A stretch of DNA of 61,766 bases, filler included, from Syncephalis fuscata S228 (taxonomy: Eukaryota > Fungi > Zoopagomycota), in NCBI GenBank assembly GCA_025786725.1. It is 4 parts of 4 records of this genome, joined end to end, with 100 filler letters (N's around TTAATTAATTAA, not from the genome) between each part and the next. Parts side by side here need not be neighbours in the genome. Positions count along the whole stretch, not along the records: positions 1 to 15,390 come from JAHLTZ010000217.1; 3 more parts are not named here. One strand, 5' to 3'. A model generated the notes under the pieces. It saw nothing but the letters and a program-made list of their open reading frames with translations. It had not been told where the DNA came from and did not search any database. Position 1 is the stretch's first letter. Each line of letters opens with the position of its first letter. Below are positions 1 to 44,700 of this stretch, piece after piece. The position numbers were made by a program, and so were the translations under genes.

Positions 1-527
1 TTGCAAAAATGTTAGTCAAAAATGCAATTTACGTAATATTGCTAACAAAAGCAATTAAAGTTATACGATTTAAAGATTTTAATTTTAAAAATCAAATTGG
101 CATAAAGTAAATTTAAAGCATTCACAACGCCAAAACAAGCATAATGGCAATTTAATATGCAGAAATATTGCTGTAAAGTGGCAATTTATGCTACTGATAT
201 ACATATAACTTAGGTTTTTGTTAGCAAATATTACGTAAATTGCATTTTTGACTAACATTTTTGCAAAAATCATTGTTCTATAAAACATACCAATGTGTAT
301 AACTAAGCATGGACAACTCGAATCCAGCAATCATTTTGCTGTATTTTGTTTACACAAGCCATAAATGGTAAAAAAACGGCCATTTTTGCACATTTATTAG
401 CGTATTATCGCAACCATTGGTCTATACCGCAACACAACTACGGTATACTTCGCTAATAGTTGTCTGTATGTCATGTGCATGCTTGTGCAAAATATCATGC
501 AGTTTGCTTGATTATACGTAAAGTTAT
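1..527. repeat. Partial copy of the foldback repeat core (matches ~4562-5088), cut by window start
   Basis: Near-identical to 4562-5088; the same spurious 81-aa ORF occurs at 85-330 and 4648-4893. Confidence 0.9.
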
Positions 528-1435
528 TGTTATAATTGTGACTAATATTATATCTTTTTATCCATTATTTTACGCCACAGGAATGTGGTAATTGCAAACA
601 TTACTAAGACAATTATCATCATAATATAGCCATCAGTCTAAATAACGAATATATTAGCACGTGGCCAATTAATAATATAATGCTTATTTACTTCTTTTCT
701 ATTGTTATTTAACAAACACCATTTTTCTTACTATTCTTTCAACTTTACTAAAAAGCTAAACATTGGTTTAAACAGCGTAGTTACATATTGCACTGCTCAA
801 CAGCCATATAAATTATAATAAAGCAATTCTTTTTTTCATCTTATTGTATATACGCGCAGCATTTTTGAGCTTCTGAATATCAATAAAAGCAGCTGCTACG
901 TATAGCGATTTGAATTCGTTATTCTATGTGTCTAATGTAATTGTTTAAATACTCGTTGTCGTCAAAGTCACTACTTTCTGACTATCGTAGGACTTGATCA
1001 ATAGAATGTGTGTGTTAGATAAGACAGTTCAACAATTGGATGTAAGATATCGTTTATTAGTTAATAAAATGAGTTGGTTTTTATACTAAAATAATTAGTA
1101 TAGCCGTGTGATAATAGTAATAATAATAATAATAATAGTAATAATGATACTATGACGTCGGCGATCATCGTCATAAGATCATGGGTTAGTCAGGAGTGAG
1201 TTCATATGGCTAGTCATCGGATTGATCATATGAATAGATAATTCATATGACTAGTCATATGGTGAATATTTGGTGCCGGGTGGAGTGGTGTGTAATTTAG
1301 TCAGGCAAAAATTCAAAGTCCGACACTCGTAAAGCACACGCACCATCTCTCATCCTATTTTCTCTTGGGAACGCGGTATTCTTATACAAAAACAGTCACA
1401 CCATGTGGCTGGTGCAAAATTTTAACGATGCAAAA

Positions 1436-1507
1436 TGGAGGTAACGGGGTTTGAACCCGTGGCCTCTCGCATGCAAAGCGAGCGCGCTACCACTGCGCTA
1501 TACCCCC
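1436..1507 (-). tRNA. tRNA-Ala(UGC)
   Basis: GGGGGTATAGCGCAGTGGTAGCGCGCTCGCTTTGCATGCGAGAGGCCACGGGTTCAAACCCCGTTACCTCCA; cloverleaf, TGC anticodon, G3:U70 Ala identity pair. Confidence 0.97.
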
Positions 1508-1539
1508 ATGGGAAAGCACCTGCTTGCAATTTTACAATT

Positions 1540-1553
1540 TTTTAAATATATAT
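1540..1553 (-). promoter_or_regulatory. TATA-like element upstream of tRNA-Ala (ATATATATTTAAAA, -46..-33)
   Basis: Identical 14-mer at the identical offset upstream of tRNA-Thr (48443-48456). Confidence 0.6.
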
Positions 1554-2308
1554 TCCTATTTTTATTTTTATTTTATTTACTTTTTATGTTGACTTTTTAA
1601 ACAGTTAGTTTTACTATATAATTCACTAGTATTTAAGACCCAAAATACTAGTTTTTTTTATGTATATTATGTTGTTATTTCAATTTAATGCTAGTAATAT
1701 ATTGTATAAATATAAACATAATTTATTTTTAGTTATTTGACACAGCAGTTTATAACATACATTTTTAATTATTCATAATACAATTTGACTAATAATTTAA
1801 AAATAGTAATTTAATTAAAAAGCTTCATCGATTTTGCATATAATTATAATTATATACTATTCAGAAATATTAAATTTACATGTATACAAATCTAATGATA
1901 ATTAATACTAGTTTGCTACTTAATCTTGCCACTGTTTACAGATAATTTGAATAAACAAGTGTATATAATAACAATTGTATAGAAACTAGAAACAAATACG
2001 ATTTAGCAATGCGGTAGTATTAGTTTGCAATCGTAGTATACATATAGGTATATTTGATCAATCATATCGATGCTAATGCTAATAAAATAGTATTTAGCTA
2101 ATTGTTACTTTATTAGTATAGCCATTCTTTAAATGTTAGCAACAAATAAATCAATCAATTAAATGGAGTTGCTAAAACCATATTAGTTTATCCCGCATGA
2201 GTTGGTCGAATCAAATGACGAAAGTGAAGTAACAGTGCGATCTAAAACAGCACGAATGCGGGGAGGGGGAGGCCAATTTGTTTCGTTTTTATTCTCGTAT
2301 CCTTTCAA

Positions 2309-3277
2309 ATGTCACTTTTTGAATCCGCAGCAGCAGCTTTACTTGCTCGCGCGCACAGAGATAGCGATGCGCTGCTTTCTCTGTCATGTGCATCTACACG
2401 GCAAAGAATCGTCCTGCTGAGGGATTCTTTACCTCCTGAAGAGCTATGGCAGTGGCAACAAGAAGATTCCGCGACAGCAAACTGTGATGATACGCAGGCG
2501 CTTATTGAGCACTTATTCACACAGTCTTCAGTAAACGTATCGAAAGTACTTTCGCCAGCAACATTCCGAATAATCGATGGCGCCACACGAAGAGCACGTT
2601 TACGTTTTGCGGTAAAAAAGGTTGGCCAAATTAACAGCTCTCTTGCTGGCTTATCATATGAGTATTATATTATAATGGAGCGTGAGCCAGACGGTATATG
2701 GCGCTACTTTAATACTATTATTGAAAAGCATAGTACAACTATCAACGGAAACGACGGTAGTGCAACTAAATCAATAAAATCTGATTTATGGTTCGACTCT
2801 ATTGGTATGGCAGAAGATGCAGCAAGACACGGAGGAAAGCCTGTAGGTACGGATGCTTTAACTACGGAAATAGCATTTGACAAACAAAATAACTATGTTG
2901 CCTATGGACAACCGAGCATGTATGAAAACAACGAAAATGACGACGAGGATGACGACGACAATTATTGGGCAATGTACGGTAGCAGCACGCCGGCCAAAGC
3001 ATCGCTACCATCTCGTGCCAATGTAGCTACTGAGGATGATTATTGGTCACGCTATGATGCTATTGACTCGCAAACACCTCCACCACGCAAAGATGGTGCT
3101 AAAGCAGCTCAAAGTAATGCGGCCAAACATGTTGTTCCTGATAATTCATCGCGTCAGCTATCAAGTATTGGTGACCCACGAGACGTACTACTACAGAATC
3201 TTCGTGTTTTACGACACATGGCTGAACGGATGGGCATTAACAAGAATGAATTCATTGAAATGGCACGACAAGCTTAA
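2309..3277 (+). CDS. Hypothetical protein, 322 aa, with two acidic DD(D/N)YW-x-x-Y motifs
   Basis: Uninterrupted ATG-initiated ORF, GC-richer than its flanks. Confidence 0.8.
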   Translation: MSLFESAAAALLARAHRDSDALLSLSCASTRQRIVLLRDSLPPEELWQWQQEDSATANCDDTQALIEHLFTQSSVNVSKVLSPATFRIIDGATRRARLRFAVKKVGQINSSLAGLSYEYYIIMEREPDGIWRYFNTIIEKHSTTINGNDGSATKSIKSDLWFDSIGMAEDAARHGGKPVGTDALTTEIAFDKQNNYVAYGQPSMYENNENDDEDDDDNYWAMYGSSTPAKASLPSRANVATEDDYWSRYDAIDSQTPPPRKDGAKAAQSNAAKHVVPDNSSRQLSSIGDPRDVLLQNLRVLRHMAERMGINKNEFIEMARQA

Positions 3278-3497
3278 AGGCATGCTTAGCATAAATGACA
3301 AGTAACTTATAACTGTGATAAAATATAATTAACAATAAAATAAATATTAAATAACAGCAATTTATTGGTATAAAGTATTTCTATAGCTATTCAACAGATT
3401 GATGACATGAATTACTATCGTTACTTTTTATTATTTTGTTTAGTACCGATAGTAATTAAATTATTTATAATTTTAACTGCAAAATACCATTAAACAG

Positions 3498-5616
3498 TTT
3501 ATTTTATTAAACTTATTAAAAATATTATTATTTGGTGGTCAAATAACTATATTTAATATTCACACAATTGGACTACATATTTGTTCTATTGAATATGCGA
3601 ATGGGTGGTAAGTTATATTGGCCATCAAATTTACTATATGATAATTCTATTAGCATGATTGTTTTGTGTAAATATATCTATTGCAAATATTGTCACATCG
3701 TTACATTTGCACAACATTGCAATATTGATACTTGCATTGTCTTATTCTCTAGCTTTTTACAATTCCATGCCGATCTATTTGGCGCTGACTAGCCCAATAA
3801 TCAATAATCATAAATGACCAGTCCAATAAATGTTTTAATAAAGCAAAAGTTTGTGCACACTCGTATTCATTGTTTATCTGTATGGCTCAATAAACAAAAT
3901 AAATCAAGTTTATTGGTAATAAAGCTAGAGACAAACGGTTACTAGTTATGAATAGTATGTAGCTACTACAAATAAGTAATATAGAATAGAATGCGTATAC
4001 TGTGGAAAGTATATGAGTAGTAGTGCTAAGATTACAATGCATAAAACATTATCATTGGCGTACAATATCCATGGACATTGTATGATACATCATTTGTTAT
4101 TTACAATAAATATAACCATTGCAGAAATGTAATTTATCATTTCTGACAGCTGTGTTTTAACAGAATACGCTATTTTCATTTATAATACCTTGAAATGACG
4201 ATAAATATTAATTTACGAATTCAGACGTAAAACCATTGCGTCCATGTTATAAAGTATTCTAATAGCAATAATTTACTTAATTAAACATTATTAAGGTTGT
4301 GCATAACTTACGTATAATGAAGCAAACTGCATGATATTTTGCACAAGCATGCACATGACATATAGATAGCTATTAGCAAAGTATACCGTAGTTGTGTTGT
4401 GGTATAGACCAATGGTTGCGATAATACGCTAATAAATGTGCAAAAATGGCCGTTTTTTGCCATTTATGGCTTGTGTAAACAAAATACAGCAAAATGATTG
4501 CTGGATTCGAGTTGTCCATGCTTAGTTATACACATTGGTATGTTTTATAGAACAATGATTTTTGCAAAAATGTTAGTCAAAAATGCAATTTACGTAATAT
4601 TTGCTAACAAAAGCAATTAAAGTTATACGATTTTAAAGATTTTAATATTAAAAATCAAATTGGCATAAAGTAAATTTAAAGCATTCACAACGCCAAAACA
4701 AGCATAATGGCAATTTAATATGCAGAAATATTGCTGTAAAGTGGCAATTTATGCTACTGATATACATATAACTTAGGTTTTTGTTAGCAAATATTACGTA
4801 AATTGCATTTTTGACTAACATTTTTGCAAAAATCATTGTTCTATAAAACATACCAATGTGTATAACTAAGCATGGACAACTCGAATCCAGCAATCATTTT
4901 GCTGTATTTTGTTTACACAAGCCATAAATGGCAAAAAACGGCCATTTTTGCACATTTATTAGCGTATTATCGCAACCATTGGTCTATACCACAACACAAC
5001 TACGGTATACTTTGCTAATAGCTATCTATATGTCATGTGCATGCTTGTGCAAAATATCATGCAGTTTGCTTCATTATACGTAAGTTATGCACAACCTTAA
5101 TAATGTTTAATTAAGTAAATTATTGCTATTAGAATACTTTATAACATGGACGCAATGGTTTTACGTCTGAATTTGTAAATTAATGTTTATCGTCATTTCA
5201 AGGTATTATAAATGAAAATAGCGTATTCTGTTAAAACACAGCTGTTAGAAATATAGCTATTACATTTCTGCAATGGTTATATTTATTGGACTGGTCATTT
5301 ATGATTATTGATTATTGGGCTATTCAGCGCCAAATAGATCGGCATGGAACTGTAAAAAGCTAGAGAATAAGACAATGCAAGTATCAATATTGCAATGTTG
5401 TGCAAATGTAACGATGTGACAATATTTGCAATAGATATATTTACACAAAACAATCATGCTAATAGAATTATCATATAGTAAATTTGATGGCCAATATAAC
5501 TTACCGCCCATTCGCATATTCAATAGAACAAATATGTAGTCCAATTGTGTGAATATTAAATATAGTTATTTGACCACCAAATAATAATATATTTTAATAA
5601 GTTTTAATAAAATAAA
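3498..5616. mobile_element. ~2.1 kb foldback / long inverted-repeat element, non-coding
   Basis: 3498-4612 is the reverse complement of 4779-5616, apart from a 280 bp left-arm extra segment bounded by CAATAAAT (3824-3831, 4104-4111); ~166 bp spacer. Confidence 0.85.
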
Positions 5617-6559: not shown

Positions 6560-7186
6560 TTAGCAACTAATGACGCGATCATGCTTAGCAATAACTTTTT
6601 TGCCATCAGAAGATACAAAAGCTTCATACTCATGCATTGGAAGAGATACGAGAAACTTCCATGCAGGCTCAATAGATATATCCTCAACATGGTAATATGT
6701 TTTTTCGCCAAATGCACGTTTAGTGCGGTCAGGATTAGTAAAACTTTCTGTTTGCATATCCTCAATGGACTGTTCTCGTCTGTCACCTTCTACAAGTTGA
6801 ATATCAGCTGGATCTTGGCCAAGATGACCGGCAAGTGTTTTAAAGGCATCACGGATGGATACATATCGTGGCGATGCCAGACTGGTGGCAATGTCTCCGT
6901 GGAAAAATCTATCCTCATATGTACATACATGATTGTTTCTGTCAACGTGTACCCGAATGCTAGTATTCTCAATAGGTGTCCCATTTAGCACCTGTTTTAA
7001 ATTTACATGGGTTACATCCATTCCACTTGACTTGTAATGGCTTAGTACAATGTAGTCATCCTGTTTAACGCCAAGTATTTCATGCGTAAAAGCCAAAGCT
7101 ACATCCAATGGACTTCCGGCCGATGCAAATCGCGCACCATCTCTTTGAAGCGTCTCCGAGGTGACGGCAGTTTCGTATTTAACCAT
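6560..7186 (-). CDS. Fungalysin (M36)-type propeptide-only protein (FTP + PepSY-like), 208 aa
   Basis: VTHVNLKQVLNGTPIENTSIRVHVDRNNHV matches the FTP pattern; PAWKFLV..HEYEAFVSSDGKKVIAKHDRV resembles the end of M36 prodomains; no HExxH, no signal peptide. Confidence 0.75.
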   Translation of the reverse strand: MVKYETAVTSETLQRDGARFASAGSPLDVALAFTHEILGVKQDDYIVLSHYKSSGMDVTHVNLKQVLNGTPIENTSIRVHVDRNNHVCTYEDRFFHGDIATSLASPRYVSIRDAFKTLAGHLGQDPADIQLVEGDRREQSIEDMQTESFTNPDRTKRAFGEKTYYHVEDISIEPAWKFLVSLPMHEYEAFVSSDGKKVIAKHDRVISC

Positions 7187-7912: not shown

Positions 7913-7999
7913 GCACTGATGATATTCACTGGTGTGGATAGCGGGCTTCAAACCCGTTGGCGATTTGTTTCGCAGCGGTTCGATTCCGCCTTCGGTGCG
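7913..7999 (+). tRNA. tRNA-Sec (selenocysteine), anticodon UCA, eukaryotic 9/4 fold
   Basis: GCACTGATG-AT-ATTCAC-TGGT-GTGGAT-A-GCGGG-CTTCAAA-CCCGT-TG-GCGA-TTTGTT-TCGC-A-GCGG-TTCGATT-CCGC-CTTCGGTGC-G: 9-bp acceptor with U:U mismatch, 6-bp D stem with UGGU loop, UCA at 7948-7950, long variable arm, 4-bp T stem, G73, 87 nt. Confidence 0.93.
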
Positions 8000-8523
8000 T
8001 AGCATGTCCTCATGCGCACGCTGCAAGTGTAGTAAGTTGTTAGTGTTTTGAACGATATATCCGACTATTGGATCCCTATTACAGACACAGTTCATGTCTG
8101 TTTTTTAAACACCCCTTAGCTCATGCCCAGTTTAAAAACGCTAATGCATCGCATGCTGCGATTTAAGCCATTAGCAGAAATAGCGTAATATGTTTTGGAT
8201 AATAAAATGATATCTTATTAAATAAACGCGTATGTTTTATACTGTTTAATTAAAATATGAAGCCAGTATTTATTCGATGACGGATATAATTTGCCACACA
8301 TTTATCTGTCGGTCAGCATTGGTTAGTTGGCTGATGATTATATCCGAATTACATTTGGTCAGTAAATGGTAAAATAATAGTCCGATACGTGTGAATATCT
8401 TCATACTTAAACCGTGCACAGACAACATTGTATTCTCATGGAGCAATGAAATAGCAAAGCGATTGTGCTGGAGAGAATTGCCATCAACTATCGTAGTATT
8501 CAATTACTAGTATTTCTATAATC

Positions 8524-9888
8524 ATGCTTTTTACAACTTGTCTCATGAACTGCTTGTATTGATATTTTTGCAATTGGATATTAAGTCATTATTTGCATTT
8601 GCAAAACTAGCAGCAGTTTATTTTATAGTATAATAGAGGACGATATTTTATGGAAGTGCATCTACAAGCAAACTTTTTTCTTTAATCGCTGCGAGCAAGA
8701 GTTTTATACAAAGTTAAAATCTTTTCTGGATGCATCAAATACAAGTGGTCGAATAGCAATACATTTGCTACTTTATAGACGGCGCATGGAGGTTGAAAAT
8801 AACTGGTATAGCTGGCGATTTACAACAATAGATCAACAATGTCAATATACAAAAGATATAGACAGCTGTATTAGTCGGCTAACAATGTGTATTGCTTTAC
8901 AGCAACAACAACAACAACATCCTGTCTTATTAGATGACTATGCATCACCCGTAGATATTTCAAAACTAAACACACTATCAAATAAGCGGCTAAACTCATT
9001 TATAAAAACAATAGATAATAGCAAAAAAGAGTCTTTTAGAATCGAGAAGCTGCATTCTACAGCAGTATTTGTTTTTAGTAAAATGATAATTCAACAAAAA
9101 ACTGGAATAAGCTTGAAGCTTCTTACATGGAAAAGCGACTGCTGCACTTTTATTAGTGCAATTAATTTAGACAAATCATTTCAGCTATTAGATGTGTTTG
9201 ATAATTGGATACTGGTCGGAGAAACTAAGCCTGGTGATGCTTTAGTTATTTACAAAATATGCAACCTAATTACTGGAACAACTACTAGCAGCTTTATTTT
9301 TGATAGAAACGCCACCTGCCATTTACAAGCAGCTACACAGTGCAGTGTTTGTATTTATACTGTCACACCACTTGCAAATGGCCAATCTGCAAACTGGGAA
9401 TTGTGGCGAGTTGGCAGAGATAGTCACAAGGAATGTATAAACCATGGATCTATTGCTTTGCCATCCACAGGTGGATATCGATTAGTTTTGACACGAAGGA
9501 TTGACAATCAAAGCGTGCTATTACAATTTTGGTCTGGTGGAATTATCGGCGAAGACTGTTATATGACTTTTCACACTCTGGGTAAACAATCTATTTCTTG
9601 GGGTAGATTGCTGGATGGTAGCATTATAATAGCAATTTTATGCAAGAAGGGCGTTGTTTTTGTAGATGGAGCTGGCGACCCTGTATTGTAGTAAATATTG
9701 TTGATGGCGCGACATTGCGAAGCTTAAAATTTTCAAAAAAGTGCTATATAAAACTTAGAATTGGCGCTATCGTTCAAGTATACCAGTACGATGAACGACG
9801 GGCCATTTATACAATAGATTTATCTTCAGGAGCTCAAAGACAATCAATTTGCACTGAAAACCGATTGATTTTATTCAGCGTGCGTTAA
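8524..9888 (+). CDS. F-box protein, frameshifted at homopolymers (assembly error or pseudogene)
   Basis: FYNLSHELLVLIFLQLDIKSLFAFAK..IEDDILWKCIY is an F-box; restoring one base in runs near 8530, 8605 and 9681 joins the 8765-9691 and 9640-9888 ORFs. Confidence 0.7.
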
Positions 9889-11067
9889 TATGAAATGTAA
9901 TTGGACGATTTGGAGAAATGCTCAAGTAGTAATGAGCAGAAGCGCTCTGCCTCTTGGACAAAAATAGCATGACCGCATACTCTAAAAACTTCCAAACGTG
10001 CTTTCAAATACTTTGCAAGAAATTCCGAATTGGAGGCAGCAATGATGGCATCTTGGTCGCCAGTGCATACCAATACTGGGAAACGGGCGTGTAAGATCCG
10101 CTGAAGACCTTCGTTGCAAAGATAATGGTGTTCTACAGCCCAAAGTTGTCTTTCGTAGCCTTCGGGTGTCTGTGGTTTACTGCTTGACAAAGCGTTACGG
10201 AAAAGCTGTGATTAAACGTTGTTAGTAGTGTTGCTGTGTATTGCTAAGTAATATACTGTACATTGGTTATAAAGTCGCGATTGGTTTGCCTGGGATTGTA
10301 CTTGTTTGGTGCATCCAGCCAAACCTTGGGATATTCTATTTGAAGCATTTTAGCCTCTTGTTCAGGATTCATTGGTTCTAGCTTTCGTGGAAGTGCTCCC
10401 GGAACCTAATGATATTGTATTGAAAATAAAATAAAAATTAGTTACCCATGCATTAGAAATAGTATATAGCATACTTACTGGAGTTGGCTGCCACTTGGCC
10501 GTAGTGCTCACTAGGCATAGTGATTTAATGTAGCTGGGATAGTCGCTAGCCAGCTGCATTGCAATCATGCCGCCCATGCTGACTCCGATAACATGCACGT
10601 TTGATTTCCATCCTAAATGATTCAAAAGTTGTATGGTGTCTTCAGACATATCTTTAACGCTATAAGAGTATATAACAGCAGCATAATTATTTAATGTTTT
10701 ACAAGCTGTTTAAAATAATCTTACACGTAGTTGCCTTGGGTACATCTAATATTACTTGGTTAGTATGCTATTAGTTCTATAATTTTATCATAGATGTTTA
10801 CCAGAATGGCCTACACCGCGATTATCGATCGTTAACACCTGGTATCCTCGTTGCGCCAAGAATTGTGCCTCTATATTCCATGCTTCACGAGAGTTGTTTA
10901 AGCCTGCACGTCTGGTTAGCACTGTTCGTTGTATGACATTGAGTGGCTAAGTGTTCGTACCAGAAAGAAACACAACATGTTGTGCTCCCGTGCATGCAAC
11001 TCGTATGCTATTTGAACCAGTCTTTTGGTACAACGGTCCATGACCTTGAATACTCCTTGTACTGCAT
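9885..11067 (-). CDS. Alpha/beta-fold hydrolase, multi-exon (5' end approximate)
   Basis: IAYELH..G N-terminal motif, IDNRGVGHS, HVIGVSMGGMIA nucleophile elbow, PVLVCTGDQD acid, CGHAI catalytic His; GT-AG introns. Confidence 0.85.
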
Positions 11068-41717: not shown

Positions 41718-44700
41718 ATGGATAACCGACAAGTAAGTGATGACTCAGGAGGACAATCGCCGCATAGACACTCCCAGTACTGACCACGTCCACTGCTAGA
41801 GATTGTCTCGTCTATTACTTCGGCGGCTAAAAGAACGAACGCGCGAGCTGAACGACCAACTAGGCAGCCGTGTACTTATAACAGGCACCAAAGGTCTACT
41901 TATAGATCGCCTACTAACCTATATAATTTCGCTTGAAGAATCTGGATCGCATGAACAGCTACAAAAAACTTGGTCCATACTGGAGCGGTAAGTTGCAAAT
42001 AACGATGACAACCATCACAGACCCACAACAGTTAGACTATGTCTTGTTAACGATGAATGGTACTGTACAGCGAAGAAGAAGGACACCAAAGCTGGTCGTC
42101 TATGTCAGCGGCTGTTAATGCGCACACAGCCAATTCGCTGTCCACTACATCCAACACCTCTTGCTCGCCGATCCACTACGAGCTACTAAATCGGCTAGGC
42201 GATGATGCTCATTCGTCGCCATCCTTGCTATCTAGCCAAGGCTATCGACACACAGTTGACTTATCCCGGTATGCAGATTCAAACTATATGATGTTCAAAC
42301 AGCTTGATCTAACAAACAGTCTTATTACACCAATGAATACCAATAGTAGTAGTAGCGCGAATAATGGTACATCACATTTATCTCTTTCATTTCGTTCCTG
42401 TCCGTTCTACACTGATCCTCAGCCACTATCAGATATAGTGTACGCGGAAGGTAAGTAAATAGATATAGCGTATTTATGTGTCACTAATTGTATCTGTCAG
42501 TATCAAATGTTAAAATGACCAGTGTGGCACGATTTTCACTTAATTCGAAGAATATTGAAACATTAACTGGTAGTTCGTAAGTTGGCATTTACTTATTTGG
42601 TGATTATAAAGTTAATAATGGATTTACTAAATAGATATGTACCAAGTCGTAAAACACCAAAATTCTCCTCTCATCGTGTTATGGTCTACTGCGTTGATGC
42701 GGACCAGTGGCGCACCATGCCACATGAGCCACTTTCGTTGGAATTTCCACCTGTAGTTGAATTATCTATTAACCATACGGTTATTCGTAAAGTAAGTGTT
42801 ATAATATGCTATAAACGCTACTAATTATAATACTGTCATTTATAGAATCTAAGAGGCATTAAAAATCGTCCAGGTACTGTCCATCCGTGGACATTACACC
42901 GCACTGCTGTTTGAAGCCAGGTGCTGTTAATCAATTGGACATTTCATATATTAATACACCCAAGGTAACTTACCACTATAAGCTAAATAGATATCATATT
43001 AATATCAATTAGAAATATGTATTTGTCGTATGCTTGTCAAAAGTAACACAAACATCGGAATTGGTTGATAAGTTAAAAGGACGGAAACCACTTGAGAAAT
43101 CCAATGTACAGCAGTTATGTAAGTAACATGTAATTACAACATATCAATTAATGTAATAATTTTATAATATTAATATCAATAGTAAATCGAATCGCCAGTG
43201 ATACCGAAATTACCACCACCTTATCCAATGTTTCTTTAAAATGCCCTGTAAGTTAGCAATAATTGTATTGATTAGTATGAACATTTATTGACTATTATCT
43301 ATAGTTGACCCATATGAGAATACAACTACCATGTCGATCACGAAAATGTCAGCATATTCAATGTTTTGATGCCACATCATTTCTTGAATTGAATGCACAG
43401 ACACCAACTTGGCAATGTCCCATCTGCAATCGATTACTACAGTCATGGAGGAATTGGTATGGGATACGTAAGTGTTATTACTAATCATTTATATAATTTA
43501 TTTACATTCTTTGACTAGCTATTTTAAAGAAATATTAGATAGCACAACCACATCAGTGGACAGTATTGTAATGGATGATCAAGGGGAATGGTCAATACGG
43601 CCTAATTCAACAGGTGCACGGACATCACCTAAAACGCCCTCTACTCGTCAAGACACCGTTGGAGGAGAAAAAAGAAAGCGGCTGCTATTTGATATTGAAG
43701 ATAATTCACTGCCATCTTCACCGACTTCACCTCGTTCTCCGTCATCTTCAATAGCGGGCAATAGTAATGGCGATACTAGTAACACATCTAATACGGCACA
43801 GATCATTGATTTGACGTTAAGTAGTAGCGAGGATGAACTTGAAGATGAATCAGAAAAGGAAATACCAGTATTGAATAAAAAGTCTAAAGCGACCAACGAG
43901 TCTATTTCTATAAAGACGGAATCACAGCTAGATTCAACGGCCACCACTCACGAAAATGGCCACGATAATAACAATAATACTGATGAAAATGAGACTGGCA
44001 ACCATAGCAGACCTAGTGACTGGATCCGACGGTATCTTGGTGGCTATGTCTCTACGCCATCCAGTTCCTCTACTGCACCCACTTCATTGCCAACAACTGT
44101 ATCAGTAACGGCTGAGGTAGTAGAACCAACTACATCGGCACCAGCACCGGTAGGGACAACAACAACATCTGAACTGTTACGTAAATTGAATAATCTTAAT
44201 GAACGTATTCAACATGCTCGAATACCTGTATCTTCAGTGTCTACAGCGGATGATGTTGCAACAAATGGTATTACAAATAATACGGGTGCAACAACACCAT
44301 CTATTTCACCTACATCGGATACGGGACAGACACAATGGTATTCACCAAATGCATCTCCTTCTTCTAATGCTAATACTAATGCTACTACTACTAATACTGC
44401 TGAAATGATACCACTTAATACAACTATTCGGCCCACATCACACGGTACAATTACGACAACACTATTGTCATCCACACTACCAGTAAATAGAAATGTATTA
44501 GATGATCGAGTGACACCGCCCACTAATAGCAGTAATGGCCATCACAGAAATACACCAACTCAGTGGTACACGCCATCAAGTGATCTGGCACAACGACAAC
44601 CACAACGCCGTCTATATAACAATACTGACAATGATGGTGGTGCAGTCTACAGGGATAGACTAGAACCGTCCCATCTATCTCTCTATTCAACCCATCCTCG

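Follow-up and report, generated by a model that had tools for sequence, protein, structure and literature searches.

A tRNA-Sec gene and a predicted selenocysteine system in the zoopagalean fungus Syncephalis fuscata

Selenocysteine (Sec) systems of early-branching fungi were reportedly described by Mariotti et al. in Nat Microbiol in 2019. Sec is known from Harpellales, Gonapodya and Bifiguratus, with seven selenoprotein families that do not include GPx; no more than 5 of the 16 fungal selenoprotein genes yielded a SECIS (none in the other 11), and undetected variants were suggested (Mariotti et al., 10.1101/314781). Nine Sec-using fungal species, none of them a Syncephalis, have been repeated in reviews up to 2024. 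Amses et al. 2022 (PMC9457484) report 11 Sec genomes across most early-diverging fungal phyla, and its figure may already mark Zoopagales as Sec-using. The system described here shares with those of Harpellales, Gonapodya and Bifiguratus the same machinery set, SPS and SelenoH as selenoproteins and a signal of vertical inheritance, whereas Syncephalis fuscata belongs to another order and subphylum (Zoopagales, Zoopagomycotina), has a predicted Sec GPx and carries SelenoU and MsrA as Cys forms. The preliminary description of this DNA had proposed an unreported Sec lineage. This holds to the extent that a literature search found, the Amses figure aside, no text that connects Sec with Syncephalis, Thamnocephalis or Endogonales, and is weakened to the extent that the 11 genomes of that study may include it. 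The tRNA and pathway of S. fuscata belong to an already established fungal trait, and this lineage may in part have been recognised before. What would be new relative to the known fungal systems are the predicted Sec-GPx4 and its long SECIS candidate, no earlier description of which was found in the literature accessible to search, and the predicted SBP2-ankyrin fusion, for which a literature search found no published report.

The tRNA gene lies in a window of 61,766 nucleotides, this being the whole stretch of DNA that was analysed. ARAGORN called a tRNA-SeC(TCA), and the same 87 nucleotides matched the full Rfam model RF01852 with 76.9 bits (gathering score 47, E=1.2e-14). Folding was more stable than expected (z = -3.74), with none of 200 shuffles equally stable, and the departures from the Rfam consensus leave the stems paired. 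The UCA anticodon in a CUUCAAA loop, the 9-bp acceptor with a U:U mismatch, the 4-bp T stem, the 6-bp D stem closing UGGU, the extra pair (A7940-U7958), the long variable arm and G73, all read from the sequence in the preliminary description, were verified pair by pair (Table 1). The same check gave the eukaryotic 9/4 split of the 13-bp acceptor plus T axis, as against the bacterial 8/5. G73 is an identity element for serylation. The gene thus shares all structural hallmarks of the eukaryotic/archaeal tRNA-Sec family, with a full-length match and no difference of substance, the first T run lying 47 nt downstream. It also appears to agree with human tRNA-Sec. The observation of a tRNA-Sec gene is confirmed. 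A second, identical copy is present at positions 81625-81711 of C68, a contig of 541 kb. The contig of the window (C132) is 99.4-99.6% identical to C68 over ~14 kb, indicating that the two are alternate haplotypes of one tRNA-Sec locus.

Table 1. Positions of the tRNA-Sec gene and its parts in the window, and of Sec-related genes on contigs of the S. fuscata assembly and in other fungi.
Feature	Position	Strand	Details	Basis
tRNA-Sec gene	window 7913..7999	+	eukaryotic 9/4 type, anticodon UCA	ARAGORN, Rfam, fold, pair check
Acceptor stem, 5' strand	window 7913..7921	+	9 bp with 7990-7998; U.U at 8th pair (7920/7991)	
D arm	window 7924..7939	+	6-bp stem, 4-nt UGGU loop	pair check
Anticodon arm	window 7940..7958	+	6-bp stem including extra A7940-U7958 pair; 7-nt CUUCAAA loop; UCA 7948-7950	
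Long variable arm	window 7959..7974	+	16 nt; 4-bp stem, 6-nt loop	pair check
T arm	window 7975..7989	+	4-bp stem, 7-nt loop	pair check
Discriminator	window 7999..7999	+	G73; CCA not encoded	pair check
First T4 run 3' of tRNA-Sec	window 8046..8049	+	47 nt past gene; possible Pol III terminator	
eEFSec	C310:123900-126232, allele on C62		13 GT-AG exons, 561 codons, 0 stops	
SPS	C235:307158-308690		8 exons, one GC donor; sole internal stop a TGA in KG-U-GCK motif	
PSTK	C223:668407-667212		4 exons, 0 stops; best family TIGR03575 (eukaryotic PSTK), E=1.1e-10	
SepSecS	C223:881771-879701		exons 2-10 in frame; exon 1 one base short	
SBP2	C79:302388-304977		SID-like motif, L7Ae, ankyrin repeats; exon 2/3 junction one base off	
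SelenoH, TGA	C112:880588-880586		CxxU motif split by intron	
GPx, TGA	C223:519797-519795		exon 2 (Sec motif)	
SPS with in-frame TGA, Ramicandelaber brevisporus	L044:2912-2914		SECIS-like hairpin	
SPS with in-frame TGA, Jimgerdemannia flammicorona	L106:~1250		SECIS-like hairpin	
SPS with in-frame TGA, Thamnocephalis sphaerospora	L082:11842		SECIS-like hairpin	

The Zoopagales affinity guessed earlier from the neighbouring genes was correct, the single-exon EF-1alpha of the assembly being identical to KAI9594699.1 of Syncephalis fuscata (Zoopagales), a soil fungus and parasite of other moulds. The models of SBP2, SPS and GPx derived from this assembly likewise bear the label S. fuscata.

The machinery search that the preliminary description had proposed located eEFSec, SepSecS, PSTK, SPS and SBP2, all on large contigs of the S. 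fuscata assembly; together with the selenoprotein genes they are spread over five contigs of 173-979 kb. Searches were run exon by exon with spliced models, and splice sites were set by coordinate checks, as the ab initio splice model was unreliable. Frames are open in eEFSec (best PDB match human eEFSec, E=1.9e-17), SPS and PSTK, and SepSecS and SBP2 are orthologous genes, each one base short in an indel-prone assembly. SepSecS matched human SepSecS with E=2.2e-11; a further patch of its exon 1 is apparently three bases short, and no second full-length copy was found in the assembly. Two 5'-truncated SepSecS copies, C223:887927-889400 (+) and C242:710-2170 (+), both begin in intron 3 and match the full copy at ~99.7% identity, the one on C223 being inverted and 6 kb away from it. 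The L7Ae part of SBP2 matched human SBP2 (E=3.7e-14), and the SID-like motif aligned to human residues 500-538 in a weak match (E=0.15). This order, SID-like motif then L7Ae domain, is shared with known SBP2 (SECISBP2), from which the S. fuscata protein differs by its C-terminal ankyrin repeats. The repeats share an exon with the second half of L7Ae, indicating that the fusion was not created by gene modelling. The protein is named merely an ankyrin repeat protein in NCBI (KAI9594998.1), an Atlas search detected the ankyrin repeats alone, and a search for the fusion in relatives matched only the S. fuscata protein itself.

Three genes carry a TGA at a catalytic position: SPS, SelenoH and a GPx4-type peroxidase. 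The SelenoH TGA was seen in the S. fuscata genome only. In SPS the in-frame TGA is also found in Thamnocephalis, Ramicandelaber and Jimgerdemannia; together with the accompanying SECIS-like hairpins it makes these three species probable Sec users. SPS proteins were also matched, at the protein level, in Endogone, Paraphysoderma, Polychytrium and Synchytrium microbalum. The selenoproteins guessed in the preliminary description fared unevenly: SelenoH was found with its TGA, SelenoU, MsrA and AhpC-type genes turned out to be Cys forms or to have no TGA, and searches of the assembly yielded neither DI nor animal-type TXNRD; GPx4, found here, was missing from that list. SelenoU-like, MsrA, MsrB and SelenoO candidates were rejected as Cys forms, peroxiredoxin and Sco matches were rejected too, and the TXNRD matches proved to be glutathione reductase and lipoamide dehydrogenase. 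Searches of the S. fuscata genome, with weak controls, found no DI, SelenoF/M or SelenoK.

The best PDB matches of the peroxidase were human and mouse GPx4 (E=4.5e-21 with one exon), against 9.6e-12 for yeast Hyr1, and the catalytic residues Sec, Gln, Trp and Asn are present. Like animal GPx4/PHGPx, it has Sec at the same motif and an N-terminal extension with two possible starts; the 80 residues ahead of the second ATG resemble, and are probably, a mitochondrial-type targeting peptide. It differs from animal GPx4 in being fungal and in the 113-124 nt apical insert of its candidate SECIS. The TGA is kept in S. pseudoplumigaleata, Thamnocephalis sphaerospora, Jimgerdemannia flammicorona and two intronless, transcript-like JGI contigs, on which it is in frame with conserved coding downstream; a paralogue in T. 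sphaerospora has TGC. All five NCBI models of these GPx genes skip the active-site codon, and it is absent from every public protein model examined for these GPx genes and for the SPS genes. A partly processed GPx retrocopy at C301:~42200-43613 (-) (L046) has lost introns 1-3 exactly and kept intron 4 with a mutated donor, independently confirming the splice sites that keep the GPx TGA in frame. In this retrocopy the TGA has become TGC, the frame is shifted and 68 nt of the 3' UTR are deleted; NCBI annotates it as a protein. GPx and SPS genes of Syncephalis type, with 86-87% identity, occur on an intronless JGI contig (L068) and an ENA metagenome contig (L043), pointing to unsampled relatives with the same system.

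SPS and SelenoH are followed, 45-60 nt after the stop, by type II SECIS-like hairpins with AUGA and GUGA cores, a tandem GA core, an 11-13 bp helix II and an apical AA. They are of normal size compared with type II SECIS, several having long bulges of 8-15 nt. The SECIS-like hairpins of several of these fungi (L082:13466, L092:~1300, L044:4038, L018:2677) have CUGA, GUGA and AUGA cores and often apical bulges of 8-15 nt. Neither Rfam SECIS_1 over the genome nor all Rfam families over eight loci gave a SECIS match; as even ordinary-looking hairpins were missed, this result is uninformative, and the bulges and varied cores may lie behind it. Folding energies of the SECIS-like hairpins alone were unremarkable (z -0.3 to -2.1). 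A genome-wide SECIS pattern scan was dropped, its matches being as frequent as those of its control.

No ordinary SECIS hairpin was found in the GPx 3' UTRs. Alignment of three Syncephalis-type GPx 3' UTRs revealed two conserved blocks, the first consisting of CUGAC, 12 nt and an A run, and the second, 113-124 nt on, of 12 nt followed by UGAU. The helix II strands, separated by 113, 119 and 124 nt in the three sequences, pair at 10/12, 10/12 and 11/12 positions, shuffles being as good in 4/300, 4/300 and 0/300 cases. Over the 26 pairs of the element 88% of the cells pair, against 32-36% in slid controls, and six changes are double-sided; this covariation was reached by 3-4 of 500 shuffles, the structure having been derived from the same three related sequences. 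In S. fuscata the element covers 217 nt, C223:518822-519038 on the minus strand. For each species, folding gives the insert as one long, irregular stem. With type II SECIS the element shares the tandem GA core, a ~12-bp helix II, the unpaired A run, helix III and a helix I below; it differs in the C before UGA, a bulge of ~18 nt and ~100 nt of extra apical stem. Canonical SECIS apical regions are short, of tens of nt, and hence the element is filed as a SECIS-like variant. Jimgerdemannia GPx has a SECIS candidate with a 53-nt insert. A covariance model built from the three elements matched only the GPx gene and its retrocopy. In metagenomes 12 matches were obtained, none beside a GPx gene and the best with 8/12 pairs; these are chance matches, usable as a rough negative control. 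The 68 nt of 3' UTR that the Cys copy lacks were themselves considered as the SECIS and dropped, as they have no 3' GA.

Judged from conservation and pairing, it is likely that the long GPx element works as a SECIS. The alternative, which we regard as rather unlikely, is that it is some other conserved element and that recoding uses a different hairpin or none that is recognisable, the Sec system itself being real. This would agree with covariation drawn from only three sequences, with an AA run that begins 15-16 nt from the core, slightly far, and with the retention of the element in the Cys retrocopy. It would agree too with helix pair probabilities of 0.0 in S. fuscata, where the helix is absent from the minimum-energy fold (~0.4 and 0.9 in the other two sequences), and with an equally good chance helix (11/12 pairs) in the 3' region of a Cys gene. 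Against it stand the tandem UGA/GA core, invariant on both sides, the invariant A run, the 10-11 of 12 pairs at homologous positions with four double-sided changes in helix II, the recovery of the helix by RNAalifold unprompted, and searches of these UTRs that found no ordinary SECIS.

Taken together, the tRNA fold, the five genes, the three in-frame TGAs at catalytic positions, the conservation in relatives and the SECIS-like hairpins make a working, vertically inherited eukaryotic Sec system in S. fuscata very likely. According to established pathway knowledge, the tRNA would be charged with serine and phosphorylated by PSTK, and SepSecS would convert the phosphorylated tRNA to Sec-tRNA with selenophosphate from SPS. 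eEFSec would bring Sec-tRNA to UGA codons, with SBP2, an ankyrin-repeat fusion in this fungus, binding the SECIS in the 3' UTR; the predicted targets are SPS itself, SelenoH and the GPx4-type peroxidase. Zoopagales and Endogonales may well have kept an ancestral Sec GPx4, Syncephalis recoding it through a SECIS with ~100 extra nt above helix II that is read by the SBP2-ankyrin fusion. The few fungi known to use Sec would be joined by an order of mycoparasites and, from the search for homologues, by several other lineages, altering the number of independent losses. A fungal Sec-GPx4, if true, would offer a microbial model of selenium-dependent defence against lipid peroxides, which is what GPx4 does in animal ferroptosis. 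The long GPx SECIS candidate would also be a concrete case of the unknown variants proposed by Mariotti et al. (10.1101/314781).

The assembly lacks one base of the reading frame at each of four places: exon 1 of SepSecS (C223:881.56-881.77 kb), the junction of exons 2 and 3 in SBP2 (C79:302.56-303.18 kb), exon 5 of GPx (C223:519.34 kb) and exon 1 of SelenoH (C112:880.65 kb). If these frameshifts in four of the eight genes were real, the lineage would have used Sec until lately and the tRNA would be a fresh relic, a reading that the two truncated SepSecS copies and the existence of a Cys copy of GPx could also fit. It is nevertheless improbable. All lesions are small deletions, with no premature stops by substitution seen, and the Cys copy of GPx is itself frameshifted. 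Ribosomal protein S12 on C223, also a contig with Sec genes, has three 1-nt indels in its coding exon relative to the intact copy on C16, and an L7a copy is broken four times by the same kind of 1-nt indels in short runs. The retrocopy and both relatives have the base that GPx exon 5 lacks, and the tRNA-Sec alleles are identical and fully paired. The shared indels of the ribosomal genes and the retained GPx base point to assembly error as the likely cause; judging by the indel pattern, the four 1-nt frameshifts are thus probably assembly errors. Frameshifting 1-nt indels were noted at C223:~715 kb, C172:~1 kb, C13:~490 kb and C318:~71.5 kb, in ribosomal protein S12, L7a, a disulfide isomerase and MsrB; the assembly should be polished before gene loss is inferred.

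An orphan tRNA relic, the outcome that the preliminary description had named as damaging, is not what was found: five factors and three TGA-containing selenoprotein genes, with introns and on five large contigs, argue against both a relic and a bacterial contaminant. A bacterial tRNA or contamination, already disfavoured in that description, was rejected on the 9/4 fold, the introns and the orthologues in relatives. Trees were built from named proteins among the top matches, without unnamed metagenome rows, most protist GPx or the ordinary GPx of fungi. In the SPS tree S. fuscata pairs with Thamnocephalis (100/100), and a branch of moderate support (71/93) has all the fungi to one side; in the GPx tree a 93/97 branch does the same for the fungal sequences, among them the Cys form of Rozella. 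This pattern fits vertical inheritance of both genes. Carry-over of host DNA is conceivable for a mycoparasite of fungi such as Syncephalis, but an origin of the Sec genes from a host or another contaminating eukaryote can practically be dismissed given the size of their five contigs, the grouping of SPS with Thamnocephalis and of GPx with other Syncephalis, the orthologous TGA genes in independent S. pseudoplumigaleata and Thamnocephalis assemblies, and an intron style and GC like those of neighbouring genes.

In the window, positions 1-5616 hold a cluster of direct and inverted repeats of 300-800 bp, 97-99% identical and differently arranged on the C68 haplotype; the cluster may be left over from a transposon or reflect misassembly. 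An ordinary tRNA-Ala(TGC) lies at 1435-1508 (-) and, unlike tRNA-Sec, is directly followed by a T run. Divergent from tRNA-Sec, a 208-codon ORF at 6560-7186 (-) has a fungalysin propeptide (FTP) motif, with no catalytic domain in this frame, and an alpha/beta hydrolase gene split by an intron occupies 9885-10649 (-).
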